A program made the position numbers and the translations under genes. Below, one piece after another: positions 5,895 to 63,467 of a DNA stretch of 64,000 nucleotides. Location: assembly GCA_907165135.1 (NCBI GenBank), contig OU015568.1:7254001-7318000 (forward strand), given 5' to 3'. Each line of letters starts with the position of its first letter. The stretch's first letter is position 1. Source of the DNA: Oikopleura dioica. Lineage: Eukaryota > Animalia > Chordata. Under the pieces are notes generated by a model. It had not been told where the DNA came from. It ran no database searches and worked only from the letters and a program-made list of their open reading frames with translations.

Positions 5895-6425
5895 CCGCAT
5901 GGGACAGATCGGGGGATAGAGGCGCTCGGACAGAAGGTGTATTCCACTGCACTTAAGAAAACTACTGGTCGGATAAACTTGAAAATTATACCCAATACTA
6001 ATTTTGGGGTGTAGATTTCAAATCCGCTATCAAAATTTGCATAGCGCTTTTTCTTATTGCAGAAAAAATGCCATTTTTCTATGGAGGGTTTGAAAAATTA
6101 TCTCTTATTAAGATTTCTCGAAAAAGTAAATTCAATATTTGAAATCAGCAGTATCGAAAACATATAAAACCCCTTTTAGTAGACAAAATTCTTGATATTG
6201 GTTCGGTTTCAATGTGCAAACACTCAGCGGGAGGGCAATTAGGCCGCATATAATCCGGTGCAGAGGGCGGTCGGTAACCGATAATTCCTTGAAACTTGGC
6301 AGACATGCTTCAATAAAGTGAAGGAACCACCATTTTAATTTTTATCTAATTTGGACTATTCGTTCGGAAGTTATTTAGCTGAAAAGTCCTTAAGTGCAGT
6401 GGAATACACCTTCTGTCCCATGCGG
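5895..6425. mobile_element. Non-autonomous TIR element with TTAA target duplication (piggyBac-like MITE)
   Basis: TTAA|CCGCATGGGACAG...AAGGTGTATTCCACTGCACTTAAG at the left. Its reverse complement CTTAAGTGCAGTGGAATACACCTTCTGTCCCATGCGG|TTAA is at the right (TTAA at 5891-94 and 6426-29). The left TIR carries a 26-bp insert with a duplicated GGACAG. Confidence 0.75.
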
Positions 6426-6470
6426 TTAACTTGGAAGTCATAAGTACCGTTCCAATTTTATCGGAGGGCG

Positions 6471-8817
6471 TTATATGTAGACTTTGACGTCAATCTTTGA
6501 AGCAAGATCAAAACTCCATCTGGGCGACTTTCACGGACTTGTGGTTTAAATTCTTGCGAAAGGAATTCAATCAATAGTAGCGCCTTACGAGTCGTAAGAT
6601 ATCGCTACTAGCGATTTATACAATCATCTTTGATAATCTTCGAAAAGAAATTACATGCTTCTTTATGATAAGTCATGAAGGACACGACTTATGAAATCTT
6701 GAAGAATATCAATTACGAAACTAAGTAAGTACTTCTTTCATAAAATTCAGCAACCCTACACAATTAAACGCGACTTTATTCGGCTGGGGAAGTACTATTT
6801 TCCCATCCTCCGACTGCGGTAGATTTTCCGTCGTTTTCGTAAGACAAGAATAGTCCAAAAGAGTATCTTTTGCTGGAATTTCGTAGCTATCCGTCGGCAG
6901 CATAATCTTTCCGGTTATTACTGGAAAATTCCGCTTCGTTCTTTCATCTTCTGGTAGTTCATCGCAGAAGGGCTAGGATAAAAGGTCTCTTCTCTGGCGG
7001 AAAAAAAAAGATAAAGGAAGTAAAATCTCATTTTTTAAATAGAACTGCGCTCGTATTTGTTCTCTTCATTATCTATTCTGAGAGATTCTCTTTCCGCTGG
7101 AGAATCTCAAAATGCAAACAAAATATGAAACGACGCACATTTACGTTATTATAAATTGTTGTTCTTGGAACAAAGCCAGGCTTGTTTGTTTGGAAAGCTC
7201 TTATCAAAAAACGTATGATAAATAACAACTATTAAGCTTTGATGTAAGAGTTGTGGAGACATACCAATAGAATGATATTCATCGGACTGTGTGTTGGATT
7301 CGTCACGGTCAAGTACACTTGTGCAGATAAACCATCTGCAGAAAATTCAGACGGCTTGAACAATCGAATTTCAGGAATGAAGCTAACCATTTTTTTCATT
7401 TCAATCGAAAATTTACATTATGACGAACCTGGTGGCTATCAAGTGCATTTTAAATTTGATCGAGCTGGGGGAAAACTCTGGCTTGAGCAAATTGTGATCG
7501 CATTTGCGGCAGCGGAGGGATCTCTTGACGCCCATTGTCAGCCGGCTGAACATATCGGTAAACACACTTGACACATTTTTCTTTTGGAAAGTCTGTTATA
7601 TTAAAATTTACGAACCGAGGGTAGAGATCCTTCGTCAACTCCGGTTGATGCTCTGGCTGATCGAATCGTTGTTTGAGCGACGTAGTTTTCCAGAAATCGA
7701 GACCGTCTTCGGACAAATATTCTTCCGGAAGACCTTCCATTTCTTCCAGCGTTCTTGTCTCTGGATTCTCCAATTCCACTTGCTTCTTTTTCTGCCCATC
7801 GTCTTTCAACAATTGATTCAAAGTCAGCGAACGAAGAAAACCTACCTCTCAAGGAAATATTCAACAGCATCGGAGAAAGACCCCGATTTTCCCAGCGACT
7901 TTTGTGATCTTGCGAGCTGATTTACTTCTGGAAATAGATGCCTGCTGGAGCGACACTTGCTTCGTGTATTCATAGAGCTCGTTTATGCGCGACTGATTAT
8001 ATATTAGCACGAGTACTTGTATAAAAATATATTTGAAAGTAGGGTCTCAAATTATGTTCAAAGTAATTATCTGTCCCGAATTTTATGCAAAGGGTAGATG
8101 GGTTAAAAACATTCTTTCAAACCTCTTAGTTTAAAAAAATGATATCATGGAAGACTCACCTGATTGAGATTTTCTTTCTCCGGCCAAGAACCGGCCGTGG
8201 GAGCATCTGGAATACCAACATCTCGGGTCGACCAGTGACAAAATGGGCACTGCATAAAATGCGTTTTTCGCTGAAACGGTTCTTCCGGCTTCTCTGGATT
8301 TTCTTCAATCACCCACGACTGTTTCTGAGTGAGGACAGATGGACACGCAGGGCATTGCCAAAACGATCTGAAAATAACATTCCATATTGATTCTATTCAG
8401 TAAGAAACGTCAACAGTGCGCTGGGAGAAATGATCATCATTAGATTTCCGTCGCACCAGAGTCTGCCCAAGAATCTTGGGCGCATCTTGAGTCAAGATGG
8501 GAAGAATCTGACGATAGAATGAATGTTCTTTTCCTTTGGAGGAAAATCGATAAATAAATCCTTACTAACCTAGATCTGTTCTTCTTCATAATCGCCTCTG
8601 TAGTCGGAACATTGTCCAGCGCGTGCATACAGTAATGCGAGTCGACTTCGACTTGAATAAGATTGGAGTTGTAGTACCGCAGGTCATTGCAAAAGCGACA
8701 ATATAAAAGTCTTTCTTTTAGGTTCCCTCTATTGCCAGGAAAGCTCAGGACGAATTCCTTATCGCGAAAAAAAGACATGCAAACATGGAGACGTTTTAGA
8801 TAAGAAGAATTCGACAA
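6471..8817 (-). CDS. DCTN4: Dynactin subunit 4 (p62), multi-exon; terminal exons uncertain
   Basis: N-terminus [33 protein letters not shown]. Further exons read [52 protein letters not shown] and [15 protein letters not shown], collinear with metazoan DCTN4. The 3' end at 6471 (…KIDVKVYI*) is tentative. Confidence 0.85.
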
Positions 8818-37554: not shown

Positions 37555-37780
37555 TGGAAACCTGTGTTGAAAACCTGAGTCAGGGTCTGAAAGATTTCTA
37601 CTGAAAAGCCGCAAAGCGGCTTTTTAAAAAAAAAACGGCTTCGCTATAATTTGAAAAAAACTTTGGAAGGGTAACTTTGCGAAGCCGCTATGCGGCTTCG
37701 TTTTTAAAAAAGCCGCTTCGCGGCTTTTCTGTAGAGATCTTTCAGACCCTGACTCAGGTTTTCCAGACAGGTGGCCGAGC
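37555..37780. mobile_element. CCTGAGTCAGG-TIR MITE
   Basis: ACCTGTGTTGAAAACCTGAGTCAGGGTCTGAAAGAT ... ATCTTTCAGACCCTGACTCAGGTTTTCCAGACAGGT; internal GCCGC/GCGGC hairpins. Confidence 0.85.
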
Positions 37781-38252
37781 CCTGACTTTGGGATTCCTTC
37801 CAGCTTGAGTCAGAAGTCATCACGTAAAATCTAAATTACGAGAAATTCCAAGCTCTCGTTAGTTATTACATCGTACTTTGTAGCACAAATACTTTTCTTA
37901 TAAAAACTGGTTCAATCTCGACCTTCTACAAATTGCTTAACATCGAGAAGAAATTGCGGTAACTTTTGTATATTGTAGAAAACCATTTGTTAGGAGCAGA
38001 TGGAACATTTTGTTTCTCTTGAAATTGAACTCACGTTTACTTGTTGGAGCAAGTTTTCAGAAGCAACGAAAGCTGTGCAGCCGCTTAGACCGGGGATGTA
38101 ATCGAATTCGACCGCAATCGCGTTAAACATGCCCAGAAATTAGCATATTATGCAATACCGTTCTCATCTCATCTTAGATTTTCCCAGCGCTGTTTTGAGT
38201 TGAACCTGAAGGTAAATTTCTTGATTGATAGGTCAATTTCCTTGCTTCCTGT

Positions 38253-38404
38253 CTCGGCAACCTGTGTAAAAAACCTGAGTCAGGGTCTCAAAGATCTTCA
38301 ATGAAAAGCCGCTTTGCGGCTTCGCTTTTGAAAAAGCCGCGACGCAGCTTCTCATTTGAAATCTTTCAGACCCTGACTCAGGTTTTCTACACAGGCTGTC
38401 GAGC
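38253..38404. mobile_element. CCTGAGTCAGG-TIR MITE
   Basis: CTCGGCAACCTGTGTAAAAAACCTGAGTCAGGGTCT ... AGACCCTGACTCAGGTTTTCTACACAGGCTGTCGAG. Confidence 0.85.
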
Positions 38405-39094
38405 CCGGAATGTCTGTAAATGTGTGTACTTGTAATGCTGTGATTGATATTTTCCAAGAAGGAAGCGTTTTTATGTTTATCGGGCTGGTATCTTTCGTCA
38501 GTGAATGCAGCTGGGAAGGGAGATATGAACTAATTATGTCGCCACTCAATGATAAGATACGTGTGGCGAGGCAAGGGACTTGCTGGGGAAGAGTCCTTGA
38601 GCATGTTGCCGTTCCATGAAGTTGAAAAAGGGGCCTTCAAGCCATTGACAGCCAACTTGACAAATCTCATCCAAGAGGGCAGATCAAGACGTGCAGGAAG
38701 TGCCAATCACGGGAAGATGCATCATGCACTGAATACGCTTCTTCGCATAACGTGACTGCTTGAAAAGAATCGTGAGTAAATGACATGAATAAGGATTTTG
38801 AGCAATGCTTGAGTTGAAAATTTTCAAATCGAATTTGGAAGTTCTGCTGGAGTGACGATAAATTGAATCGATTCAATTTTCGGAATTGAAGTTGCTTGAC
38901 GCTGTTTATATTTGTTGCATCTTGTGTTATGTTTTCTGCGTTGCCGCTCCAGGAAACCGGATGACCCGACTCCGTGAACTGTTTATCTTGCTATCTTTTT
39001 CTTTCAGCTACTGAAATACAGTAATTTAACTACTGAAAGGGGAAAAGTGATGAGGGGACAATCTTCTTCTTTCAATAACGTAATTCTTGTTTTG

Positions 39095-46862: not shown

Positions 46863-47551
46863 TGTGTATTTACGCTTATTTGAATCTTTTTTTCATGATG
46901 AAATTAGTCAAATAATTATTCAAATAAAAAACATAGGAAAACGAAACTCTTGAAGCCAATTTCATCGTCATGTTCCTTTGGGGACTGTTTTTCCTCCATT
47001 TTATCCGCAATAATTTTCTCTGTTTTCATTTTTTGATTTATTGTCTTAGTTATTTAGACATACGGAAGAGAGTCTCAGAATTATCCAAGATATCCCTTTT
47101 TATATCGAATCTAGTGATAAGTGTCGGAGACGGGTCCTGACGTCCCTACTCCTTCTAACTCGATTTATTTCTAATTACTTTTTCTGATTACTCAATTACA
47201 ACTAATCCGAATGCATTCCGTACCTTTTTCTCGTGCCAAGGAATGTATCCAAGTCTGGTTTTATTCAATCAAAAACCTAACTCCCAGGTTTACAAAAAGC
47301 ACTAAAATCAAACAAGAAGTTTTGATAAAGTGATGAAAAGCGATTTAAAATGGGTCATTTGAACTGCCACACTTTCAATAAATCATCACTCCATACCAAA
47401 TTATTGAGAAAGCTAAAATGAAAGATTTTGGGAAGAGTAACGAGTTCTTCGCCCAACACAATGTTCCAGGCTTTTGGGAAGGAATGGATAGATTGATTTG
47501 GATCTCGTTGGGGGCAGTTACTCTCGCATTGGCAAGGGTCTTCCTAACTGG

Positions 47552-47682
47552 GCTCGGCAACCTGTGCAGAAAACCTGAGTCAGGGCCTGCGTCTTTCCCT
47601 TCGTTTAAAAAAAAGCCCCAATGCGGCTTTTCATTTTAGCTTTTCAGACCCTGACTCAGGTTTTCTACACAGGTTGCCGAGC
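47552..47682. mobile_element. CCTGAGTCAGG-TIR MITE
   Basis: GCTCGGCAACCTGTGCAGAAAACCTGAGTCAGGG ... CCCTGACTCAGGTTTTCTACACAGGTTGCCGAGC. Confidence 0.85.
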
Positions 47683-48208: not shown

Positions 48209-48795
48209 GATAGATGAAAATGACTTCTGCGGAGCAAAATCCTGACCCCAATATTTTTAGTGCTTAGTTTGTAGCGCAGAATCTAAGGAGTCGAATGGTA
48301 CAATTTTTATGTGTCCAAGCCACGAAGAATGTCAAATTCTAGCGCCTAAAGTACCTGAAAATGACAGGTCATGAAGCCCTGTATCTCCAAAAATTTTCGA
48401 AAAAAGTATGGACATATGGGTATCATTCGAAAGCCCAGCTGAAACTGTGTATGGGCACCTGGTGCGCAAGTTATGATTCTGAAAAAAAATTTTGATTGAA
48501 AATTTTTTGTCTCAAAAAATATTTTTTCGCTTGGAATTTTCTCTTGCGCAGTAGGTGCCCATACACAGTTTGAGCTGAGCTTTTCAACGATATCAAAATC
48601 TCCATATAATTCTGAAAATTTTCGGAGATACAGGGCTTCATGACCATTTTTCAAAAGGGGGCCTTTATGACGTCATACGTGATGACTCAGACCCTCAAAA
48701 TTATACCATTCGAATCCTTAGGCGTTGTTCTTTCGAATGAGCACAAGAAATATAGGGGCTAGAATTTTGCTCCGCAAAAGTCATTTTCAAGTATC
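48209..48795. repeat. ~590-bp foldback (long imperfect palindrome) element
   Basis: Nested inverted arms: GAAAATGACTTCTGCGGAGCAAAAT / ATTTTGCTCCGCAAAAGTCATTTTC; perfect 22-mer GGTCATGAAGCCCTGTATCTCC (48367-88 / 48624-45); perfect 19-mer AAACTGTGTATGGGCACCT (48442-60 / 48553-71). Confidence 0.85.
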
Positions 48796-49635: not shown

Positions 49636-50702
49636 ATGAAACCAAATGAAAATGAAGAAGAAAAACGACGAAAACGCAAGAGACTCACTGCCGCGATAAA
49701 GAGGTGCATCCTGTCCAGGAGCTTCGCGGAGAGTCCTGTTCAAGAAGATCCTGCCAGAAATGAGTTCTTTCACTGGTAAGCACTTTCAGATACAAATGAA
49801 TTGGATAAAGATAGTTACGAATTCCCTGGTCTAGTGGGTAGGTTTGCCAAGCTGCGTAGAAAACCGTAGTTAGGGTCTGAAAGATCTTAAATGAAAAGCC
49901 GCGTAGCGGCTTTTTGAAAACGAAGCCGCAAAGCTGCTTCGCAACACAATCAATCTATATTAATATTTTAGCGAAGCCGCTTCGCGGCTTTTCATTTAAG
50001 CTCTTCAAAGCTTGACTCAGGTTTTCTACACAGCCTGCCGAGCTCAGTCAATGTAGTCATCGTTAATTGCTCCCACAAACGCATAAATTTCAAAAGTGCC
50101 ACTTTCGTCAATTTTGCTCGAAAGTGACTCAGTTCCTCAAAAGTGGCTCAACACGTCATAAACTTTTATCTTCATTGATTTTGAAAGCATCGAAGCGTTT
50201 TACTGGGCAAGCTTTTCAAGGCCAAAACATGCCGTTTTGCAACAGTCTTTCAAAGTCAAACCAGAACGTGCTCGGCTATAATTTCATGGAAATTGAGTGT
50301 TTATCGACCAAGGTCGGGCGCGTTTGACGTATATTTGCGCCTGAAAAGAAAGGCATTTTCGTTCAGGGTGAAATCCACTTCCCGTTTCCAAGTATCTGAC
50401 ATTCTGATTTTAGCCAACCCCGACGAACCGGATCTTCCTGCTCTACCGACTCACAGAGCTCTACCGACTCTCAGAGCTCCACTGACTCCCAGAGCTCTTC
50501 GTATTCCTCATCGTCGTCTTCCGAAATGACGAGTCCGACAAGCCCCGACTTCGCACCCGCTGGTTCTGGGCTGCCCTTTTCCTTATCACCTCAGCCTTCG
50601 TCTCAGTCCGCCTCTACTTCCTCGGCAGCGCCCCAAACCGGCAACTGCTCCTTTCTCAAACGCAAGAATCGCAAGAAACTCTCGCTGAAGCTATCAAATT
50701 AG
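49636..50702 (+). CDS. Orphan two-exon gene, ~143 aa, basic/Ser-rich
   Basis: Exon 1 (49636-49775) reads MKPNENEEEKRRKRKRL..EFFH. A GT-AG phase-2 intron (49776-50413) contains a MITE. Exon 2 continues in frame with CQPRRTGSSC(STDSQS)x3..KRKNRKKLSLKLSN*. Confidence 0.55.
49842..50043. mobile_element. CCTGAGTCAGG-TIR MITE (degenerate), intronic
   Basis: GCTGCGTAGAAAACCGTAGTTAGGGTCTGAAAGATC ... TTGACTCAGGTTTTCTACACAGCCTGCCGAGC with GCCGC/GCGGC hairpins. Confidence 0.75.
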
Positions 50703-51304
50703 TCAATCTCTAGTCAATGTTTTCCACCAAACGAATTCTTTCTCAAAAGTTCAGGAGCTTATAATTTTGACATTTCCGCAACTTTTAAAACAAATAATAT
50801 TTAATATTTGTTGGTTTAAAATTCTTTTGTTCTGAAATGCCAAAAATAACTGACAATTTGAGAATAAAAAAAAACGCTTTGCTTGTAATCCTCCTGAAAC
50901 TGTACAGATGAGTACTCAATAAATAAAAACAAAGAAAACTACGAGGCCAGCTTTTCGCTATTTGTCCAAGTCTTGAGCAGGTTAAGAGACGATAAAGCTC
51001 AAAATTGTTGGAGAATGTCAATTCTTTTTTCGGACGGGAAATTTGAACGATAAAAACGATAAATAAGCTTCAGGGGGATTGAATGCCCGGTCAAAGTTTA
51101 CTTTGGATTATAAAAACGATCGTCGCCGTTATTGATTATCCTTGATTTGAGGGATGAGTCCGCGAGAGGTGTGCGAGAGCATGACGAAAAACCGGAAGCT
51201 CATCCCTTCCCACACACAAATCGTTTTTACGATCGGCCACACTGAATCAGTACTATTGATTGAATACAATTTTATCCAATTTTCTGCGTAAAAGCTGTTG
51301 AAAA

Positions 51305-51703
51305 ATGCTCGTTACTTATGAATTGAAAAGAGTAAAAGCAAGCGTGGAAGGCCGACCGCAACCAGATAAATGGACCGCGGGAAAAAAAGTTCTGAAAAAC
51401 CTCGAAGAATATTTTGAAGAGCTTGAAGATCTCAGGAGAAGACGAGAAGTTCTACAGAAAAAGCTCCAAGAGGAAGAAAGAAACTGTTTACTCAAGTTGG
51501 CGGGATTGCCAGTAGAGCCAAATGAGCCTGTGAAAAAACGAAGAAAAAATACAGTTTGGAACAACTTTGTCCCAGGAAAGAGAGCGAAATTAGATGATCG
51601 AATCAATCGAGGACTCGCGCGTGCAAAACGGAAATACGAGGAAAATCGAAAGCTCATTCAACAAATGGAGAGCATCATCTACCGCTGCCTTGCTCGAAAA
51701 TGA
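51305..51703 (+). CDS. Intronless 132-aa charged coiled-coil ORF with NLS-like KKRRK
   Basis: Intact ATG-to-stop ORF with E/K/R-rich heptads; partial copies at ~55010-55157 and ~59010-59105. Confidence 0.5.
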   Translation: MLVTYELKRVKASVEGRPQPDKWTAGKKVLKNLEEYFEELEDLRRRREVLQKKLQEEERNCLLKLAGLPVEPNEPVKKRRKNTVWNNFVPGKRAKLDDRINRGLARAKRKYEENRKLIQQMESIIYRCLARK

Positions 51704-51814
51704 ATTACTGTGAAATACAACTGTTGCTTATTGAATATGAACGCTTTTTTCTGATAGAGAAAGATAATTCTATCTTCAACTTCTCAACTATAAGAACAAG
51801 TAATACGCTTTATT

Positions 51815-52039
51815 AGATTCCACCCAATCAGCTAAACTAAATCGGTACTCATTGGCGTGTAAGGCCAGATAAAGATAACTACTAAGCGCGCAGCTGGTCG
51901 CGGCACGGCTGGACGCTCCGATTTAACTAGTTTGGGCTTCCTGGACATGATTCCCGCTGGGCGGGCGCTAAGTTATCTTGTTTATGTGGCCTTACACACC
52001 AATGAGTACCGATTTAGTTTAGCTGATTGGGTGGAATCT
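51815..52039. mobile_element. ~225-bp MITE with ~53-bp near-perfect TIRs
   Basis: AGATTCCACCCAATCAGCTAAACTAAATCGGTACTCATTGGCGTGTAAGGCCA ... TGGCCTTACACACCAATGAGTACCGATTTAGTTTAGCTGATTGGGTGGAATCT. Confidence 0.85.
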
Positions 52040-52292
52040 GTTCAGAATTTAACGCGCTTTTCAATGGTGCTAGTTTCATGAAGAAAAAAAAATAAAGTTT
52101 GCAAGACTTGATGCATTTTGAAGCTGGGCTTCTTTTTTCTCGCTTGATCATCAACCAAGAATGATAGAGAAAAGCTTCTGCTCGCGCTCCCTAACTCACG
52201 TTAAAATCGCGCTCGCTCACTCAGGAAAAAAAATCGGGGTGCTCTGCTCGCACTCACTCGCTCATCTTAGTTTCGACCATTTTTTCAAACAC

Positions 52293-53280
52293 TGGTGACG
52301 GCCGTCTTCTTTGACGTCTTTTGATGACAAAGAAGAGATTTCCTCCTTGCAATTTGCATGCATCTTTGGAAAGGTCGAGGTCTTTTCAGACGAAAGATAA
52401 ATTCCTCTCAAATTCAACCCCTTCCTATCGCATTCTGGACAGCTTCATCAGCATCTAATCCCAAATCGTCAATGTTTTCTTATACGTACGCTTCAAATGT
52501 CTCCTGTTTTATATTCAGGACAACTTTTACTTGATCATCAGCCATTCTCAAACGATCGAGTATTATCTCTACTTTTGAATGGAACTTTGAGTACCTCTTT
52601 CATCTCGAAAACGGTCCGACAGCTAAAAGTACATTCCGACGAGAATATTTCAATTGACAAATTGGTGAACGCTTCGTTCAGGGGGTAGGACCAACTCGTC
52701 TTCCCCCCCCCCACTCCGGCGGGTGACAAAAAATGGCCGGACCAAGCGGATGACAAGCCCAACACGGCCGAACTGCCCGACTCCGCGGAAAACAGCGAGT
52801 CTCTCTCCATCAAAGTTCACGCTGTTCTAATCTAATTTTAATCCAGCTGTGCTATGATCTTCTCTTCCGTTTGAAAAGTCTTTTCTCATCATCCAGCTGA
52901 TCTCTAATTATCTTTCATCTTTTCCCAGCTGATCTTCAGACTCTGTCGGCGCCATTACATCTGTTTCTTTGTTGTCGCAAAAGCAAATTCCAATCGGAAG
53001 AGCTGGCTCTAGGATCCTTCCGCATATCTATGCTATTACGCCTGGCGAGCGGGAAAGGTCTCGTCAGTTTCACTTCAAACATGGACAATCGAATACTCGC
53101 CGTATCTTCACTATTAAAAATGTTTACAAGGATGTTCTTAATCAGCGTATTTGGATCAGTGGGATGAAGGTTGACCTGAGCTCGCATTTCTACCTTCTTC
53201 ATTTTCACTATCAACAAGAACGCGGGCAACATCCCAGGCTTCCATCAGACCATCTTCTTCTCTGTCTGCTACTTCTGGTT
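52293..53280 (-). pseudogene. Mosaic of duplicated gene fragments: ARMC6 5' end, TAF5 3' end, unidentified fragments, and an internally deleted TAF5 piece
   Basis: 52293-52690 matches 60690-61085; 53160-53238 matches 61140-61217 and is fused directly to 53240-53280, which matches ~62472-62512. Confidence 0.85.
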
Positions 53281-53460
53281 AATCGTATGGGAGAGATCGT
53301 GGGATAGAGGCGCTGGGACAGAAGAAAAACTGGTCGGATTGACTTGAAAATTTCAGTCAATACTAATTCAGGGCCGTAGATTTTAAATGGGTTACAAAAA
53401 TATGATTAAACTTTAAGAAAATGCTTTTTTGGAAAAAAAGTTCGAACCAGAGTTATCATT
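53279..53460. mobile_element. Left end of the piggyBac-like MITE family (truncated)
   Basis: TTAATCGTATGGGAGAGATCGTGGGATAGAGGCGCTGGGACAGAAG..ACTGGTCGGAT resembles 5891-6060. Confidence 0.7.
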
Positions 53461-53694
53461 ATAAAATGGACAAAATCTCTTCTCTCTTACCAAAGTGTGG
53501 AACTTCTTGGACAACTAATCTTACTGATTATCATCTGATCATCTTCCTGCGTAAGACGTCAGCGGGAGCTCAGTCTCAGTAGGACATGGGCCCAGGAAAC
53601 GCCCTCTTTTGGCGATGACTGTTCGCCCCTCGAACCTCTCGCGCGCCCTTTTCGAACTCGCTCTGGAAAACGTCTCTTAATCAAAACATCAAAA

Positions 53695-54660
53695 ATGCAA
53701 AACCAAGTTGTTTTCAACCAACTCGGCGGTGCCTTCGTCCATGGTCGCCCCCTCGATCTGGAAACACGCGAGAAGATCGTCCAAATGTCTCAAATGGGAA
53801 TCCGCCGCTGCGTTATTTCTCGTGATCTGCGCGTTTCTATCGGCTCCGTTAGAAATATTCTCTCCCGCTTCAACAAAACTGGCCAAATCAAGCCTGGCGA
53901 GAAGAGAAGATCCAATGTCAGCAAGGAGCACGAATACCTGATCGTCGAGTACCGCAAGCAATTTGCCTGTGCCTGGGAAATACGAGAAGAAATGTTCAAA
54001 GAAGGCTTCCAGAAAGTCCCTTCCGTCGATCAAATCAAACGAGTGCTCCGCAAAAAAGGCTGCCCAGAAGAAGGCGACACCACCGACCCCGCTTCCGATC
54101 TCGATCTTTCCCCACCAACCAAGCCTCGTCGAGCTCCAACCAAATTCACTCAAGCTCAAGTCGACGCTTTCGAAGGCGCCTTTCTCAAAACCCACTATCC
54201 TGATGCCTGCGTCCGCGAAGAACTCTCGGTCCTCACCGGCATAGATATGAGTCGCATTCTAAACTGGTTCAAACACCGACGACGTCGCTACCGAAAAGAA
54301 TGCCCCGCACAGCAAGTCTCAAATCAGCCGATTCAAACTGCACCCTGCCCTTCAAATGCTCCAGCGGTTCCAACAATGGTGCCTTCTCCTCCTCCAATGG
54401 CCGATTCTCCACCAACCTCTTGGCTTCAAGAATTTATCGCTGAAACGATCGGTCCTCAACAATATTTTGACGTCCAGGAAGTCCACCAGCAAGGCAACTC
54501 TTCCGGCGGAAACAGCCCCAATGAATCTGGCTGCTACTATCCACCAGCTTCCGCTCCCGTTCCCGAAGCAGCCCAAGAGCAAATCTACAGCGCTCCAATC
54601 AATCCACCATTCGATTTTTTCAGCCCCGAAGACACCTTCCAGCAATACTTTACGCTATAA
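53695..54660 (+). CDS. Intronless Pax3/7-derived protein: paired domain plus one divergent homeodomain (321 aa)
   Basis: NQLGGAFVHGRPLDLETREKIVQM..GIRRCVISRDLRVS..WEIRE..VPSVDQIKRVLR (paired); HD PRRAPTKFTQAQVDAFEGAFLKTHYPD..REEL..WFKHRRRRYRK; no octapeptide. Confidence 0.9.
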   Translation: MQNQVVFNQLGGAFVHGRPLDLETREKIVQMSQMGIRRCVISRDLRVSIGSVRNILSRFNKTGQIKPGEKRRSNVSKEHEYLIVEYRKQFACAWEIREEMFKEGFQKVPSVDQIKRVLRKKGCPEEGDTTDPASDLDLSPPTKPRRAPTKFTQAQVDAFEGAFLKTHYPDACVREELSVLTGIDMSRILNWFKHRRRRYRKECPAQQVSNQPIQTAPCPSNAPAVPTMVPSPPPMADSPPTSWLQEFIAETIGPQQYFDVQEVHQQGNSSGGNSPNESGCYYPPASAPVPEAAQEQIYSAPINPPFDFFSPEDTFQQYFTL

Positions 54661-54799
54661 TTTTATTTTCAATTACATTCATTTTCGCTCTTTGTAAATT
54701 TTTTTTTCTTCTTAATTTTTTCTTGCACCAATTCTTACTTGTTTTTATAATAAAATCTTCAAAAATATTTCTTCTCAGCTTTTTTTTTATCAGACAAAT

Positions 54800-56160
54800 T
54801 CTAACACAAATAATAAATCTCGTTTTAAAATTCTTTTGATCTGAAATGCCAAAAATAACTGACACTTTGAGAATAAAAAAACGCTTTGCTTGTAATCCTC
54901 CTGAAATTGTACAGATGAGTACTCAATAAAAGAAAACAAATGAAAAAACAGGCCAGTCTTTCGTTCCTAATCAGTGATTAGTAATCACTATGTCAAAGTC
55001 TTAAACAGGTCAAGATCTCACGAGAACACGAGAAGTTCTACAGAAAAAGCTCCGAGAGGAAGAAAGAGACTGTTTACTCAAGTTGGCAGGGTTATCAGTG
55101 CATCCGAATGAGACCGTGGAGAAACGAAGAAAAAATACTGTTTGGAACAACTTTGGATTCGTCGGATTCTTCGGGAGCAGCACGGATCAGATTTATTGCA
55201 AGTTCTCCGCAGTTCATACTAGCCGCGTCTTTACAGAAATCTTTCGAGACCAAAAGAGAAGAAATGAGAGTCAAAACTTTTAACTTAAAAGTTTGTTCGA
55301 GCAGCTTCCTTTGCTCTTTTCAAGAAGTTTTTCAGCAAGACGAATCGAGTTTTCCAATAAATTGTGATCGACAACATAAGTTTTTGCTCTTTGATGCGCT
55401 AGAAATCTTTAACTTCTCTATACACGGGCGCGCGAGTAAGCGCTCAAAACACGGGGTCGGGAAAACCGACCACCAAGCATTATTCAGCCCTGCGCGGCGC
55501 GCTAAATCCGGAGTGTGAAAAATAGCGCCCACTATTTTGATCCCTCATTCATATTTCCGTCCAGGTAATAAGTTCAAAATAATACTGTTAGAAAGCTTGA
55601 ACACTCAGCTATTTACTCATATTATTATTAAGGAGAAAAAACCTGCAAATTTTTCGATAATGAGCTCGAAAGAGATCTGGTGCAAAGCGCCATCCCTCTT
55701 GAAAAATTTCACGAAACTTCGCAGAGTGGTTCGGTTTGTTCATATAACTTATATGATAAGTGCACATTGCAAAAATAAGGTCAAATGGATTGCCTCATTT
55801 GAAGTAACTGAGGGCCAAAGCCGCCGTGGTCGGTTTTTTCATATTCAACCCGCTTAGTCACCTTGGGATGATCCCAATGGGATCCCTGACTTCGATGATC
55901 ATCATCAACAAGCTGAGCCTGGAACATGGCACAAGCGCTCAAAACAGCGTTTTCAAACTCATCAGTGATCTCGTGATCCGGACGCAGTATTTTACAAAGT
56001 TGGCCTTGAATACCTTCAGTCATCATCGCGCATCTGTTTTCTTCGTGATTTTCAGAAACGCGTTTTACAAATCTATTCAGAGCAGCGAGGAACTCCCAGG
56101 TGCTCGTTTAGTTATCATACTTAAAACTTCTAAAAGCGGGAATTTCTCCAATAAAATCTC
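54800..56160. pseudogene. Mosaic of duplicated fragments: orphan 3' region, 5' half of the 132-aa ORF, two ARMC6 internal pieces
   Basis: 54800-54950 matches ~50780-50940; 55010-55157 matches ~51425-51570; 55165-55410 matches ~59910-60140; 55860-56110 matches ~60170-60415 with a 14-bp insertion. Confidence 0.85.
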
Positions 56161-56211
56161 CATCAAAGTTCACGCTGTTCTAATCTAATTTTAGTCCAGC
56201 TGTGTTATGAT

Positions 56212-56654
56212 TAGGGTGGCACGCAAAAAAAATCAACTTTTGCATTAAATATCGTATAGGGATCATTTTCGGATATAATATAATCTTGCCGCCGAAAATT
56301 CCAAATCTGAAAGAAAAAATTTTTTGTGACCTCAGAAAGTACTTTTTTTATATTTATATTTTATAGTTATCGGTCGATTAGTACTCGACAACTGTGATGA
56401 CCAAAACATTTTCTTTTTGATTCTGACTAAATCGAGTGCGCTCTTTTCAATGGTGAGCTTCGTTTTTCTCTATCTTCGGTTGCTCAAAATATTGATTTTT
56501 TAGTACTTTTGGAGGCTAGAAAATAGTACTTTTTTTCAAAATTTTGAAAAAAAAATTTTAGGCTCGTTCAGACACTCTGATATCTCGAACATATCCAAAA
56601 ATGAGATATCTAGATCTTTTACATCAAAAGCTGATTTTTTTGCGCGCCACCCTA
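56212..56654. mobile_element. hAT-like MITE (443 bp) with 8-bp TSD
   Basis: TAGGGTGGCACGCAAAAAAAATCAACTTTTG / CAAAAGCTGATTTTTTTGCGCGCCACCCTA; TSD GTTATGAT at 56204-11 and 56655-62; empty site GCTATGAT present once in the paralogous block at ~52851. Confidence 0.92.
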
Positions 56655-56662
56655 GTTATGAT

Positions 56663-57250
56663 CTTCTCTTCCGTTTGAAAAGTCTTTTCTCATCATCCAG
56701 CTGATCTCTAATTATTTTTCATCTTTTCCCAGCTGATCTTCAGACTCTGTCGGCGCAATTACATCTGTTTCTTCGTTGTCTCAAAAAGCAAATTCCAATC
56801 GGAAGAGCTGGCTCTAGGATCCTGGCGAGCGGGAAGGGTCTCGTCAGTTTCACTTCAAACATGGACAATCGAATACTCGCCGTATCTTCACTATTAAAAA
56901 TGTTTTCAAGGATGTTCTTAATCAGCGTATTTAGGATCAGTGGGATGAAGGTTGACCTGAGCTCGCATTTCTACCTTCTTCATTTTCACTATAAACAAGA
57001 ACGCGGGCAACATCCCAGGCTTCCATCAGATGATCTTCTTCAATGTCGGCTACTTCTGGTTAACCGCATGGGAGAGATCGTGGGATAGAGGCGCTGTTAC
57101 AGAAGGTGTATTCCACTGCATTTAAGAAAAATACTGGTCGGATCGACTTGAAAATTTCAGTCAATTCTAATTCTGGACTGTAGATTTTAAATCTGCTTAC
57201 AAAAATAAGATTAAACTTTAAGAAGATGCTATTTTTTGGAAAAATAACTT
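56663..57250. repeat. Second copy of the fragment/TAF5/piggyBac-end cassette upstream of the Pax gene
   Basis: Near-identical to ~52859-53460, including TTAACCGCATGGGAGAGATCGTGGGATAGAGGCGC..AGAAGGTGTATTCCACTGC at 57060. Confidence 0.85.
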
Positions 57251-57529
57251 ATTTTTCAAATGAGTCTCGAACCAGAATTATCATAATAAAATGGACAAAA
57301 TCTCTTCTCTCTTACAAAAGTGTGGAACTTCTTGGAAAACGAATCTTACTGATTATCATCTGATCATCTTCTTGCGTAAAAACTCCACAGGAGCTCAGTC
57401 TCAGTGGGACATGCGCCCAAGAAACGCCCTCTTTTGGCGATGACTGTTCGCCCCTCGAACCTCTCGCGCGCCCTTTTCGAACTCGCTCTGGGCTTGGCCT
57501 GGGAAACGTCTCTTTATCAAAACATCAAA

Positions 57530-58873
57530 ATGCAAAACCAAGTTGTTTTCAACCAACTCGGCGGTGCCTTCGTCAATGGTAGCCCCCTCCCCCTGGAAAC
57601 TCGCGAGAAGATCGTCCAAATGTCTCAAATGGGAATACGCCCCTGCGTCATTTCTCGTGATCTGCGCGTTTCTAACGGCACCGTCTCCAATATTCTCTCC
57701 TGCTTCAACAAAACTGGCCAAATCAAGGCTTCAAGAAACGTTTCCGGCGGCTCGAAGAGAAGATCCAATATCAGCAAGGAGCACGAATACCTGATCGTCG
57801 AGTACCGCAAGCAATTTGCCTACGCCTGGGAAATACGAGAAGAAATGGTCAAAGAAGGCTTCCAAAAAGCCCCTTCCGTCTATCAAATCAAACGAGTGCT
57901 CCGCCAAAAAGGCTGCCCAGAAGAAGGCGACACCCCCGACCCCGCTTCCGATCTCGATCTTTTCCGACCAAAGGCTCGTCAAGCTCGAACCAAATTCACT
58001 CAAGCTCAAGTCGACACTCTCGAAGGCGCCTTCCTCAAAACCCACCATCCCGATGTCTGCGTACGAGAAGAACTCTCCGTACTCACCGGCATAAATACGA
58101 CTCACATTCGAGAGTGGTTCTCCAACCGACGAGCTCGCTACCGAAGACAGTACCGAGACGCGCAGCAACTCTCAAATCAGCCGATTCAAACTGCACCCTG
58201 CCCTTCAAATGCTCCAGCGGTTCAAACAACGGTGCTTTCTCCTTCTCCAATGGCCGATTCTCCACCAACCAAGCCTCGTCGAACTCGATCCAAATTCACT
58301 CAAGCTCAAGTCGACGCTCTCGAAGGCGCCTTCCTCAAAACCCACCATCCCGATGTCTGCGTCCGCGAAGAACTCTCCGTCCTCACCGGCATAGATATGT
58401 TTCGCATTCGGCAGTGGTTCTCCAACCGACGACGTCGCTACCGAAATGAATGCCCCGCGCAGCAAGTCTCGAACCAGCCGATTCAAACTGCACTCTGCCC
58501 TTCAAATGCTCCAACGGTTCCAACAATGGTGCCTTCTCCTTCTCCCACCGATTCTCCACCAACTTCTTGCCCTCAAGAATTCAACGCTGGAATGACTGCT
58601 CACGACGCTCAGTTCATGCAAGAATCCGACGCCACTCAACAAGCCCAGATTTACCAGAACATCGGTCCTCAACAATATTTTGACGTCCAGGAAATCCACC
58701 AGCAAGCCAACTCTTCCGGCGGAAACAGCCCCAATGAATCTGGCTGCTACTCTCCACTAGCTTCCGCTCCCGTTCCCGAAGCAGCCCAAGAGCAAATCTA
58801 CAGCGTTCCAATCAATCCACCATCCGTTTCTTTCAGCCCCGAAGACAGCTTCCAGCAATACTTTATGCTCTAA
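57530..58873 (+). CDS. Intronless Pax3/7-derived protein: paired domain plus TWO tandem homeodomains (447 aa from ATG 57530)
   Basis: NQLGGAFVNGSPLPLETREKIVQM..GIRPCVISRDLRVS..GGSK..WEIRE (paired); HD1 ..HPDVCVREELSVLTGINTTHIREWFSNRRARYRR; HD2 ..WFSNRRRRYRN, offset by exactly 300 bp. Confidence 0.93.
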   Translation: MQNQVVFNQLGGAFVNGSPLPLETREKIVQMSQMGIRPCVISRDLRVSNGTVSNILSCFNKTGQIKASRNVSGGSKRRSNISKEHEYLIVEYRKQFAYAWEIREEMVKEGFQKAPSVYQIKRVLRQKGCPEEGDTPDPASDLDLFRPKARQARTKFTQAQVDTLEGAFLKTHHPDVCVREELSVLTGINTTHIREWFSNRRARYRRQYRDAQQLSNQPIQTAPCPSNAPAVQTTVLSPSPMADSPPTKPRRTRSKFTQAQVDALEGAFLKTHHPDVCVREELSVLTGIDMFRIRQWFSNRRRRYRNECPAQQVSNQPIQTALCPSNAPTVPTMVPSPSPTDSPPTSCPQEFNAGMTAHDAQFMQESDATQQAQIYQNIGPQQYFDVQEIHQQANSSGGNSPNESGCYSPLASAPVPEAAQEQIYSVPINPPSVSFSPEDSFQQYFML

Positions 58874-59311
58874 TTTAACCTTCTAATTTATTTTCCTCTC
58901 ATTTTCGCTCTCTGTAAATTTCTTCTTGCACCGATTTTTACTTGTTTTTATAATAAAATCTTCAAAAATATTTCTTCTCAGTTTTTTTTATCAGACAAAT
59001 TATGAAAATAGAAGAAAAGCCAAATTAGATGATCGAATATATCGAGGCTTTGCGCGTGCAAAACAGTTTTTTTCATTTTGCTCGAAAGTAAAATATCACT
59101 GCTGCTAAAGTAATTCGTTTTTTTTTCTGAAACAGGAAGAGAGAAACAAAATCCAATCTTCCACTTTTAATTATAAGAACAATTAATACGCTTTATTAGT
59201 CTCAAAAAGACAGGAATGATTAGAATAGAAAAATATATATCAATAAATTGTGAAGTGAAATACAGTGAACTGGTTCAAACAGAAATCTAAGTTATCCGTG
59301 AAGTGAAAATT

Positions 59312-60941
59312 TTAAGAAATGTCCATGGCTTTGAGTCTGTCAGTTGTTCCATGCTCGAGTTTCTTCCCGCTCCCAGTCCAAATGCACTTGAGGGCGACTT
59401 CGCAGCCAAGATCTCGGAGGCAGGCTTTCGCTTCGTCCAGTTTGTGGGCTTGAAGGGCGGCGTTTGCGATGCTTTCAATGTGAAGTTCGAGGAATGGTTT
59501 TCGCAATTCTGGAGCGCGGACAACGCAGTTTCGAACTGCCATCAGTCCTGAAAGGAGTCAAGTTACTGCTTTTTCCGAAGGATGTACCTGCTCTTGTGAT
59601 AGATTTTGATTTACTATGCGCGTTGATAGCACTAACTACAGCTTCAGCGCCATTCATTTTGATGATTTCCTTGGCGCACTCTGGGTTTCTCAATGTCAAG
59701 GCAGTAACGGAGCTAGAAAGATTCATGTCATAATTTGTTAAAATCAAAATCTAACCGAAGAGCAGCTAGGGCAACGCCTGGCTGGGAAAAGTGCCTCATA
59801 AGAGCGCCAATGACATCTTCATGAACTTTGAGCTGAGTGACCATTTTGTGCTTGACCTCGTCATTTCCGATCAGAGCTTTGATCAGATTCAGACACGCCT
59901 TGACTCTATCAGATTCTTCTGGAGCAGCACGGATCAGGTTTATTGCAAGTTCCCCACAGTTCATACTAGCCGCGTCCTTACAGAAATCGTTCGAGACCAA
60001 CAAAGAAGAAATGAGAGTCAAAAGTTTATTCGAGCAGCTTCCTTTGCTCTTTTCAAGAAGTTGTTCAGCAAGACGAATCGAGTTTTCTAGTAAATTGTGA
60101 TCGACAACATATGCTTTCGCTCTTTGATGCGCTAGAAATTTTTAATATTCATATTCAACCCTCTCAATTACCTTGGGATCCTTGACTTCGATGATCATCA
60201 TCAACAAGCTGAGCCTGGAACATGGCACAAGCGCTCAAAACAGCGCTTTCAAACTCATCAGTGATCTCGTGATCTGGACGCAGTATTTTACAAAGTTGGC
60301 CTTGAATACCTTCTGTCATCATCGCGCATCTATTTTCTTCGTGATTTTCAGAAACGCGTTTTACAAGTCTAGCCAGAGCAGCGATGAACTCCCAGGTGCT
60401 CGCTTTATCTTCAAGCTTTCCCCAATTTTCGGCCATTTTGCTTATTTCGAACATCATAAACGAGTTAATCCAATCGGGTTGTCCACGAATGATGACAGAC
60501 AATCCACGAATGAGAATAGTCTTTTCTCCACCTTCGGCAGTTTTTATTCTATCCATAATTTTCTGATGCGCTTTGTAAAAATCAGTAGCGTAGTGTCTGG
60601 GCTCAAAGTCCTTGCATTCTTTTTGAAGATCTTCAAGAGCTTCTTTTGATGGTGAAGCAAGAAAGTTGTCGATTAAATGTAGGATCAAGTGACGGCCGTC
60701 TTCTTCGACGTTTTTCTTGATGACAAAGTAGAGATTTCCTCCTTGCACTTTGCACGTATCTTTTGATGGGTTTAAATACTTTCAAGCAAAAGATAAACTC
60801 TTTCTCAATTCAACCCCTTCCTATGGCATCTTGAACAGCTTCATCAGCATCTAATCCCAAATCGTCAATATTTTCTTTCACGTACGCATCAAATGTCTCC
60901 TGCTTTATATTCAGGACAACTTTTACTTGATCCTCGGCCAT
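59312..60941 (-). CDS. ARMC6: Armadillo repeat-containing protein 6
   Basis: IKQETFDAYVKENIDDLGLDADEAVQDA; VDDDHRSQGSQAHQRAK; LLVSNDFCKD; LIGNDEVK; LTLRNPE; AVRNCV; AKACLRDLGCEVALKCIWTG, collinear with ARMC6. Confidence 0.9.
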
Positions 60942-60997
60942 TCTAAATAAGAAGCAAGTAAAATCTTGAGTTTTGAACGGAACTTTGAGTAACTCTT

Positions 60998-63467
60998 TCA
61001 TCTCGAAAACGGTCCGGCAGCTAAAAGTACATTGCGGCGAGAATATTGCAATTGACAGATTGGTGAACGCTTCGTTCGGTAGGGTTGGTGGTATCGGTAG
61101 TTTTTCGCGAAACCAGTGGCAGTTGTCGAAACTAAAAAATGGGATGAACGTTGATCTGAGATCGCATTTCTACCTTCTTCATTTTCACTATCAACAAGAA
61201 CTCGGGCAACATCCCAGCTGATGATTTCTCCTTTGATAGTGCCGGCAGTGAGTACGGATCCGCAGCGCGAAAATGTCAGGGCGGTGATATGTTGATGTTG
61301 CACGGGAAGTTTAACAGTTCCCTAATGAGATTAGCTTTCAGTACTTAATTTGACGACTTTAACCTTTTGTTCATCGATTGAAAATCGCGCAACGAGAATC
61401 TCATCAGATTTGGTTGACTTTGACAAGTCCCAGAAAAGAACGTGGCCTCCAATATCCGCTGTGGCCAAGTATTTTCCGCCTTTGAGAATAAAATTAAAAT
61501 TCATTCTAGAGAAGAAAGACTCTTACAAGCACCGGACCAGGAAACTGTAGAAAGGCTGGAACGATGGCCAGTCAGTTGACGAACGCATTTTCCATCGAGA
61601 AGGTCCCAGATTCGGATACAGCGGTCTTCGCCGCCAGTAGCGATGTAATTTCCATTCGGGTGGAATCGGCAAACGGTAACGTCGGAATAATGACCTGCCA
61701 TCATGCGGACTGGGCTTTCTTTGTCAGTCACCCAAACGCTAGGAATTACAAGTTTTCAATCCAACTTGAGTAAGATAATACCGAAGCGATCTATCCATAC
61801 CAGCCGAGCAAAAGTAGTGTCCATAGGGACTAAAGTGAACATCCCAAATGGGCCACATATGTCCTCTATGAACAATCACACAAGTATACACTAGAAGTGA
61901 CCATAGCCTGACTGTGCCATCTTCTCCGCCACTGACCAAAAAGTCCTTTCTCGGAGAAATAGAAACGCCATAGACAGCGCCCGTATGGCCGAGGAGTTTT
62001 CGCGTGGCAGCTTCAGATACTTGAAGAATATTATCGAGCTCAAGGCGATCTTTGTCAAGCATTTCTAGTTGAGGAAGACTTTTGATTTCGCGCAGGTTGT
62101 CGTTGCCGATTGCGTTGACTCTGATACAGCCGTCTTCGAAGCCAGCGGCGAGCACAGTTGAGTCGTCAGAAATTGTGATCGAAGCTGGAAGGCAATCGGG
62201 ATCAGAGTTTAAAACAGAGTAGAATACGCAGCTCAATTTTTGATCCCCTTCAAATGTGATTCACAATTTTCATATACAGAACTCTTACCGGTTAGTTTAA
62301 CGCGATATTCAAGGTCTTTGTAGTACGAAAGCCAATCTGCTTTATCCCCAGCGGTCAGTAGATGTTCCTGAAGTCCAAGAAGCGGAACCCGAGTTGGGTT
62401 GGGTGCATTGGCATCATTTTTTGTCTTTCTCAAGGTTGGAGCTCGAGCTTTTTTCTTCTTTTTGGGCTCGTCTTCCATCAGATCATCTTCTTCTATGTCG
62501 GCAACTTCTGGTTGACGAAGTAAACCAAGTTGGATTTTTGACTAAAAAGATGAATTTCAACCGCAGAGTAGAGCCACCGTTCTTACCTTGTTGGCATCTC
62601 TTTTGCTTCGCCTAACAAGCCTCCGGAAACAGCATCAATCTGCTCTCGCGTTCTCGGAAGCCCGTCAAATTGATCAATGAAGAGATGATCTTCGAGAATA
62701 TCGATTAGCACTTGAATATTTCTATCGTTGATATGTCTCTTCAAACTCAGCAGAGAATCACGAGTCATTCGAATAATAAAATGACGGACTTTGAAAGTAG
62801 TTATCACATCGTTTTGCGCCAGTTGCTTCTTATTTGTAACTGTAGCAAGGCGTCTGATATCTTCAATATATGGAGAGTCTTCGCCAAAGCCCTTGGCGAA
62901 TTCGTTGTAGAAATTGCGACCTTCAATTTCGTAGTTGTTTACTAGCAGTTTTATGTAAATGTGAGCAAAGCAAGGAAACAGCAGTTGTGAAAGCTCAGCG
63001 CGACTCGAATCTTTTCAAGAGTTTGAAAACGAGATCTTCCAAATGATCAGAAATCGAGAAGAAAAACCCTTTCCTAATGATTGATCAACGAATCTCTGCA
63101 GCGCAACATAAGCTTCTTTATACGAGTCTTTATCGGTTTTTGATTCATATTGTCCAAGAACTTGTCTCACATCCGTCTCGATCGTCAAATCTTTTATATC
63201 GTCCTTGTTGATTCCAGTTTCTCGCTCAAGCGCGCCCAGAGCAAAAGTAAGCCCGTGATCTCCAAGTAGTTTCATGATGGATGCGATTTCACGCTTTTCT
63301 TGTGCATTTTTAGGTTCTTTTCTACTGAACTCTTCCGCTTGTGCAGGCTCGAATCCGATTTCTTCAACATCTCTTCCGGTTTCTTCCGGTACCGGAGCAG
63401 CTGGAGCTTCTTCTTTTAACTCCGGAGACTCAACTAGCTCCGGTTTTGGGAGCTCTTCCATATCCAT
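60998..63467 (-). CDS. TAF5: TFIID subunit TAF5 (LisH/NTD2 plus WD40 repeats)
   Basis: RAELSQLLFP NTD2; LLGHTGAVYGVSISP..SGGEDGTVRLWSL; GHMWPIWDVHFSPYGHYFCSAGMDR; GHYSDVTVCRFHPNGNYIATGGEDR; ends YRTKRSPICQLQYSRRNVLLAAG. Confidence 0.95.

Follow-up and report, generated by a model that had tools for sequence, protein, structure and literature searches.

Can a Pax gene carry two homeodomains, and if so in the larvacean Oikopleura dioica, how did the gene come about and what has become of its product? The question is posed by an open reading frame (ORF), here termed gene D, on the chromosome of the pseudoautosomal region (PAR) at OU015568.1:7,311,530-7,312,873 of O. dioica OKI2018_I69 (GCA_907165135.1). 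The stretch analyzed (the window) comprises the 64,000 nucleotides (nt) at positions 7,254,001 to 7,318,000 of that contig, and coordinates below are counted from its first letter unless another locus is named. D encodes a paired domain and two tandem homeodomains and has a tandem sister gene, S, with one. On balance, and with moderate confidence, we read D as a real, young paralogue of the Pax3/7-like gene chr1.g1548, restricted to the Okinawan lineage of O. dioica, which arose by the copying of that gene and an exchange between two short CCACCAACC sites.

A paired domain followed by two homeodomains

The ORF of gene D is uninterrupted, with no internal stop, and its 447-amino-acid (aa) product consists, in order, of a paired domain, homeodomain 1, a linker, homeodomain 2, and a C-terminal tail, as follows.

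57530 to 58873, forward strand: gene D, an intronless ORF of 447 codons plus stop.
57545 to 57904, forward strand: paired domain of D, aa 6-125 (116 bits, versus 141 in the parent gene).
57974 to 58153, forward strand: homeodomain 1 of D, positions 1-60, aa 149-208.
58154 to 58273, forward strand: inter-homeodomain linker of D, 40 aa, predicted to be disordered.
58274 to 58453, forward strand: homeodomain 2 of D, aa 249-308.
58952 to 58957, forward strand: AATAAA 3' of D, 79 nt past the stop codon.

A first-pass annotation of this DNA had described a Pax3/7-type paired domain and two S50 homeodomains, and this holds: Pfam matches PAX (PF00292) to residues 6-125 over the full length of the model (E 1e-32) and Homeodomain (PF00046) to two separate stretches, both full-length, while WFSNRR occurs twice, with S50 in each homeodomain. 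Both homeodomains also retain R5, W48, F49, N51, and R53. In single-unit Pfam scans, the first unit of D scores 59 bits and the second 53, against 75.9 for the parent homeodomain. AlphaFold2 renders each homeodomain of D as a three-helix bundle with predicted local distance difference test (pLDDT) values of 77-91 by block; the RED subdomain of the paired domain reaches 82-86, the PAI subdomain is low, and the linker, abundant in Pro, Ala, Gln, and Ser, lies at about 34-45. Judged from these models, both homeodomains and the RED subdomain probably still fold, and the PAI subdomain appears to be compromised. Between the paired domain and the homeodomain, no match to an octapeptide pattern ([HY]S[IV]..[IL]L[GS]-like) was found in D, S, or the parent; as the conserved parent also has no match, we regard this as a feature of this O. 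dioica subfamily.

The locus already has a public gene model with one exon and the domain order PAX, Homeodomain, Homeodomain, and the 447-aa protein is present, without a name, in NCBI nr and UniRef as an AUGUSTUS model; the OKI2018_I69 assembly combined Nanopore, Illumina, and Hi-C data, with gene models by AUGUSTUS (PMC8008620). NCBI nr also holds two shorter products, one of 158 aa from D (P0206, 58397-58873) and one of 137 aa from S (P0061, 54247-54660), which begin at a Met in homeodomain helix 3, the former in the second homeodomain of D and the latter in the homeodomain of S. Because neither is recorded as a separate gene, they are probably second AUGUSTUS isoforms.

An in-frame duplication of 100 codons

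The second homeodomain of D is the product of an in-frame tandem duplication of 100 codons. The features involved are these.

57971 to 58270, forward strand: repeat unit 1 of D, 100 codons, homeodomain 1 plus a Pro/Ala/Gln/Ser-rich linker.
58271 to 58567, forward strand: repeat unit 2 of D, 99 codons, homeodomain 2 plus linker.
58262 to 58270, forward strand: CCACCAACC microhomology at the junction of the two units of D, a motif match.
53695 to 54660, forward strand: sister gene S, 321 aa, single homeodomain, tandem paralogue of D.

The 100-codon unit had been recognized in the first-pass annotation, which called the duplication an exact one of 300 bp; the period is indeed 300 bp (start-to-start spacings of 300, then 297), but the copies are not exact: their ungapped blocks are 87-91% identical, and a global alignment, which needs one 3-nt indel, gives 85%. 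The motif CCACCAACC, which encodes SPPT, occurs four times in the whole window (0.13 matches expected by chance), bracketing the S unit at 54112 and 54409 and sitting at the D junction. When the five unit boundaries are aligned, the D junction is of the downstream type on its left side and of the upstream type on its right. The parent has 24 bases more than D and S at the upstream CCACCAACC site, upstream of the homeodomain, indicating that this site arose when the common ancestor of the two genes lost those bases. The anatomy of the junction and the placement of CCACCAACC thus support the microhomology mechanism proposed earlier.

In a maximum-likelihood tree of the unit, the two units of D (U1 and U2) and the S unit form one clade (100/99 support) with a trichotomy inside, and the internal duplication is therefore about the same age as the duplication that separated D from S, not recent relative to the gene pair. 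An unequal crossover between paralogues that had already diverged, in which homeodomain 2 would be nearer to S, gained no clear support: the tree is a trichotomy and the shared-derived sites form a mosaic, in which six are common to U2 and S (clustered in helix 3), four to U1 and U2, and two to U1 and S. Gene conversion, or some exchange between already diverged copies, is possible in the history of the D and S units.

A copy of an intronless gene on chromosome 1

The parent of D and S is chr1.g1548 (CAG5104794.1) of the same genome, which is intronless and encodes 362 aa with one homeodomain. D and S are 85% identical to it in nucleotides over the coding sequence (CDS) and 120 nt of 3' untranslated region (UTR). 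This homology begins 6 nt 5' of the ATG and extends some 120 nt beyond the stop, ending in D about 50 nt past the AATAAA, and is confined to positions 5995-7209 of the parent locus (L008); the flanks are unrelated. That the homology is limited to the CDS and a short 3' stretch indicates that a transcript-sized piece was copied between chromosomes. As to signs of a retrocopy, D and S have no A-run at the 3' end and are without stops or frameshifts, and the parent itself is intronless. Synteny of the window with the loci of relatives was sought, and none was found beyond the gene itself.

In our reconstruction, a transcript-sized piece of chr1.g1548 was copied to the PAR, beside ARMC6 and a TAF5-like gene, where the loss of 24 nt 5' of the homeodomain then made a second CCACCAACC (SPPT). 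The PAR copy was duplicated in tandem, yielding S and D. In D, 100 codons were doubled at roughly that time, by slippage or unequal exchange from one CCACCAACC site to the other, giving a paired domain, a homeodomain, a 40-aa flexible linker, and another homeodomain. Afterwards, D and S changed some 20 times faster than the parent in amino acids, their frames kept, with repeated hits on DNA-recognition residues.

Two candidate interpretations of related sequences were set aside. The conserved relatives P0001-P0008, which include OKI chr1.g3919 (P0006) and Bergen CBY30607.1, are not all orthologues from other lineages, because g1548 (P0001-like) and g3919 are paralogues in the same genome. A joint from 53899 to 57742 in run X1, which might have been a third copy or a recombinant, exactly matches the parent locus and reflects cross-mapping.

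A further Logan locus (L001, run SRR23998815) is syntenic with the parent locus on chromosome 1, with a lipase gene upstream, and is 93% identical to it in the CDS (dS 0.33) and 89% in the flanks. This divergence indicates that the sample comes from a lineage other than that of OKI2018_I69, one that had already branched off when D and S arose. The D and S copies were not found outside Okinawan-lineage runs.

Changes in DNA-recognition residues

The first-pass annotation had suggested that both homeodomains of D still bind DNA. This was overstated, resting on five kept residues and passing over changes elsewhere in the homeodomains and in the paired domain. With invariance judged across five conserved relatives, the family-invariant RVSHGCVSKILSR of the PAI recognition helix is RVSNGTVSNILSC in D (RVSHGCVSKIL to RVSNGTVSNIL), corresponding to H47N, C49T, and K52N, and the paired domain also carries R16S and R56C; its NGRPL is NGSPL. 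Homeodomain 1 has R3Q, Y25H, R44H, Q46R, and I47E, and homeodomain 2 has Y25H, Q46R, I47Q, and A54R; the homeodomain of S carries R5P, S50K, and N51H. In short, D does not keep all the canonical Pax3/7 residues that contact DNA from helix 3 of the PAI subdomain and of the homeodomain. Pfam scores are lower as well, with PAX at 102 bits in S and the homeodomain of S at 49.

Six sites differ in all of the parent, D, and S, and all six lie in or beside recognition elements: three are alignment columns 21, 49, and 51, which comprise a Ser next to the N-terminal hairpin as well as the His and the Cys of PAI helix 3, and the other three are positions 43, 46, and 47 of the homeodomain. At homeodomain positions 40-47, the nonsynonymous density relative to the parent is 0.41-0.56, compared with about 0.08-0.10 in the rest of the homeodomain and a gene-wide proportion of synonymous differences (pS) of about 0.2; the hydrophobic core residues are kept in all three homeodomains, the two of D and the one of S. 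In S, 5 of the 6 strict homeodomain DNA-contact positions are changed versus 11 of the 54 others (p 0.004). In established homeodomain structures, residue 47 touches the TAAT core and Tyr25 touches the backbone, and their changes in D make altered or weaker DNA binding likely.

Evolutionary rates

Nei-Gojobori estimates of the synonymous divergence (dS) and of the nonsynonymous-to-synonymous ratio (dN/dS) are as follows.

Parent versus its relative L001: dS 0.33, dN/dS 0.04.
Conserved relatives among themselves, paired domain: dN/dS 0.01-0.15.
Conserved relatives among themselves, homeodomain: dN/dS 0.04-0.12.
D or S versus parent: dS 0.25-0.27, dN/dS 0.36-0.39.
D versus S: dS 0.11, dN/dS 0.76-0.91.
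Homeodomain 1 versus homeodomain 2 of D: dS 0.12, dN/dS 1.05.

D and S are the young, diverging pair that the first-pass annotation took them to be. By parsimony, the branch to D carries 7 synonymous and 18 nonsynonymous changes and that to S 10.5 and 26.5, and strain variants in S comprise 9 nonsynonymous and 3 synonymous changes. The two genes differ by 7.8-8.7% in coding sequence and by 6.1% in their shared upstream non-coding sequence.

Reading frames, transcripts, and independent DNA

All five indels that distinguish the coding sequences of D and S are multiples of 3 (3, 3, 3, 18, and 66 nt), compared with none of the nine in flanking non-coding sequence (1, 1, 1, 11, 20, 23, 25, 2, and 10 nt; Fisher's exact p about 0.0005). 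When neutral drift was simulated since the D/S split, 5.8% of runs left D open and 14.7% left S open, giving a joint probability of about 0.009 that both are open; counted from the divergence from the parent, that probability is much smaller still. The in-frame indels and the open ORFs together indicate that selection maintains the reading frames of D and S. The rapid evolution of the proteins reflects relaxed selection, possibly with a diversifying component.

Three partial RNA reads (about 55922-56050) were considered as an Okinawan-lineage control and discarded, as their loose-end sequence is absent from the window. At the level of DNA, six runs contain 35-73% of the sampled words, and Logan contigs from two DNA runs of different studies cover the whole of D, junction included, with 95-100% identity at the junction. 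One contig of run X3 extends at least 56 nt to each side of 58291 and so crosses 58270/58271, and no joint skipping 300 nt of D was reported among the Logan contigs of the two runs.

Rarity and known relatives

A full phmmer search against 1.84 billion representative proteins gave 7,843 hits. Of 204 top relatives retrieved through two protein searches, 194 carry a single paired domain and a single homeodomain, and none joins a paired domain to more than one homeodomain, in line with the rarity claimed at first pass. Proteins with several homeodomains but no paired domain are known, and a metagenome scan for genes like D gave only canonical single-homeodomain relatives. In the literature, we found no described protein with a paired domain and two homeodomains and no paper on D. 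The architecture had been called novel, which stands insofar as the literature does not describe it; a PAX-Homeodomain-Homeodomain model was, however, already part of the public OKI2018_I69 annotation, and variable additional Pax37-like copies in oikopleurids have been published (bioRxiv 10.1101/2023.07.18.549157).

The best named matches of D are paired box protein 3/7, Pax-7, and segmentation protein paired, all of Pax3/7 type. With canonical Pax3/7 proteins (PAX3, PAX7, and Drosophila paired and gsb), D has in common the paired domain and an S50 paired-type homeodomain, but it has no octapeptide, has one additional homeodomain, is intronless, and shows 36-46% identity over the domain-containing part. 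The parent chr1.g1548 is, like D, intronless and without the octapeptide, with a paired domain, an S50 homeodomain, and a Pro/Gln/Ser tail; it has one homeodomain and a dN/dS of 0.04, whereas D has two, a dN/dS of about 0.8-1, and a different chromosome and upstream region. Oikopleurids have Pax37A and Pax37B plus variable Pax37-like copies, amounting to two to eight Pax37 genes per genome, and the additional (C/D-like) copies are far more divergent than A and B (Lagman et al., bioRxiv 10.1101/2023.07.18.549157). D and S match this pattern of lineage-specific additional copies; that paper does not mention a two-homeodomain member.

The nearest functional analogue of D, by comparison of architecture, is DUX4, in which two Pax3/7-like PRD-class homeodomains that arose by internal duplication act as a working DNA-binding module (PMC4730607). 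The DUX family (DUX4, Dux, and DUXA/B/C, of eutherians) resembles D in having two tandem PRD-class homeodomains derived by internal duplication and in being young and fast evolving, and differs in having no paired domain and in lacking the E47 and Q47 of D's homeodomains. The DUX inter-homeodomain linker is about 15-20 aa, much shorter than the 40 aa of D. As D has a paired domain and both its homeodomains group with the O. dioica parent (100/99), the likeness to DUX is convergent only.

Surroundings of the two genes

D and S have in common the segment immediately upstream of each, which is unrelated to the upstream region of the parent and holds fragments of a WD40/TAF5-like neighbor.

56657 to 57529, forward strand: upstream segment of D, 94% identical to 52853-53694 upstream of S.

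The neighbors of D on the minus strand are ARMC6 and the TAF5-like WD40 gene, and both Pax genes are embedded in a mosaic of duplicated fragments extending from 50779 to 62516. Pieces of the ARMC6 region at 59909-60405 and 60689-61077 recur at 55162-56109 and 52295-52679, and pieces of the WD40/TAF5-like gene at 61140-61217 and 62472-62516 recur, adjoining each other, 5' of both Pax genes (53160-53280 and 56941-57064), where the 1.25 kb that lies between the two source pieces is absent. Between D and S, the Logan summed word depth rises to 4,870 in run X1 and 3,938 in run X3 for the bin 55340-55533 and to 769 and 1,243, respectively, for the bin 55534-55727, compared with about 100-430 in neighboring bins; this looks like a high-copy repeat. 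An inverted-repeat element of about 40-130 nt that looks like a miniature inverted-repeat transposable element (MITE) recurs on both strands at 47547-47682, 49848-50048, and 37556-38406 and also at 1104-1227 of the parent locus, and long imperfect palindromes, similar to their own reverse complements, occupy 48209-48795 (71% over 600 nt) and 51815-52039 (75% over 236 nt). An Rfam scan of the window from 50 to 64 kb gave no match.

Discussion

From its sequence, D would be a translatable, putatively nuclear DNA-binding protein whose specificity or affinity for DNA appears to be altered or weakened. Several observations weigh against our account of it as a real, young paralogue. The short products in NCBI nr may mean that real transcripts of D contain only its 3' part, without coding for the double homeodomain. 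No listed RNA run contains D sequence, and no reads fall on D or S in two raw RNA runs of unverified cryptic-species lineage; as these runs may not be Okinawan, the zero counts are no evidence of silence. No Logan contig is longer than about 300 nt, and none spans both homeodomains of D. The enrichment of changes at contact positions reaches p 0.004-0.005 for S and is not significant for the homeodomains of D (p 0.09-0.47). A dN/dS near 1, finally, is also expected of a dying copy.

The observation last named leads to the alternative that D and S are functionless duplicates whose ORFs have not yet been broken and that the two-homeodomain architecture has no role. Apart from dN/dS ratios of 0.76-1.05 among D, S, and the two units, decay fits the loss of family-invariant DNA-contact residues from the paired domain and all three homeodomains, the eroded Pfam scores (59, 53, and 49 versus 76 bits for the homeodomain; 116 and 102 versus 141 for PAX), the 9-to-3 excess of nonsynonymous strain variants in S, the absence of RNA reads (with the lineage of the runs unverified), and an upstream region of D that is a patchwork of neighbor-gene fragments. 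It sits poorly with the kept frames (5/5 versus 0/9 indels in multiples of 3), the joint probability of about 0.009 for two open ORFs under neutrality, the intact hydrophobic cores with changes concentrated at positions 40-47, and the clustering of multiply hit sites in recognition elements, and we consider it rather unlikely. An error of assembly is very improbable. The genome is that of one individual with about 3.6% heterozygosity whose haplotypes were merged by software (PMC8008620), so that haplotypes wrongly joined during the Nanopore assembly might account for a second homeodomain or a D/S tandem, and the Logan contigs are too short to bridge gene D; but the units differ by 10-15%, above allelic divergence, the junction is in frame and lies at a microhomology, a 300-bp repeat fits well within single Nanopore reads, and runs from two other studies cover the junction without a 300-nt skip. 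The first-pass annotation had likewise argued from the differences between the units that D is no artefact.

Much of what speaks against decay could also be taken as a sign of adaptive neofunctionalization, with D and S under diversifying selection on their DNA-recognition surfaces and D acting as a DUX-like tethered homeodomain pair joined to a RED subdomain. The first-pass annotation leaned this way, picturing D as a covalently pre-dimerised homeodomain pair. Frames and ORFs are kept despite high dN, nonsynonymous changes are dense at homeodomain positions 40-47, paired-domain H47 and C49 and homeodomain positions 43, 46, and 47 have been hit repeatedly, coding divergence between D and S exceeds that of the upstream non-coding sequence, and DUX4 provides a precedent for a tethered pair as a working module (PMC4730607). 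The windows were, however, partly picked post hoc and the counts are small, contact positions are not significantly enriched for changes in the homeodomains of D, the replacements at position 47 (by Glu or Gln) and position 25 (by His) may merely weaken binding, and the absence of the copies outside Okinawan-lineage runs gives no sign of long-term retention; we think this explanation unlikely. It is similarly doubtful that D and S are to Oikopleura what the DUX/ETCHbox-type genes are to mammals (young, tandemly amplified PRD-class factors under diversifying selection on the surfaces that read DNA), with D as the first natural combination of a paired domain, its RED half functional, and a tethered homeodomain pair that would read a new composite site.

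Under the account that we favor, that of a real, young paralogue of g1548, the simplest view of the second homeodomain of D is that it is a by-product of the CCACCAACC exchange that has been tolerated, not a demonstrated innovation, and D is an evolutionary curiosity and a variant of a known expansion-prone family, not an established new class of regulator. If D is not expressed, it is another short-lived copy in a family known for variable expansion in larvaceans. If the protein is produced and can bind DNA, D would offer a natural experiment in which a three-module DNA-binding factor was assembled in one step by microhomology-mediated, exon-free duplication, and it would independently parallel the way in which DUX arose from a homeodomain of Pax3/7-like type. 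Because the parent, S, and D reside together in one small and genetically tractable genome, in an animal in which CRISPR works, the effects of duplicating a domain and of turnover in the recognition helix are directly testable.

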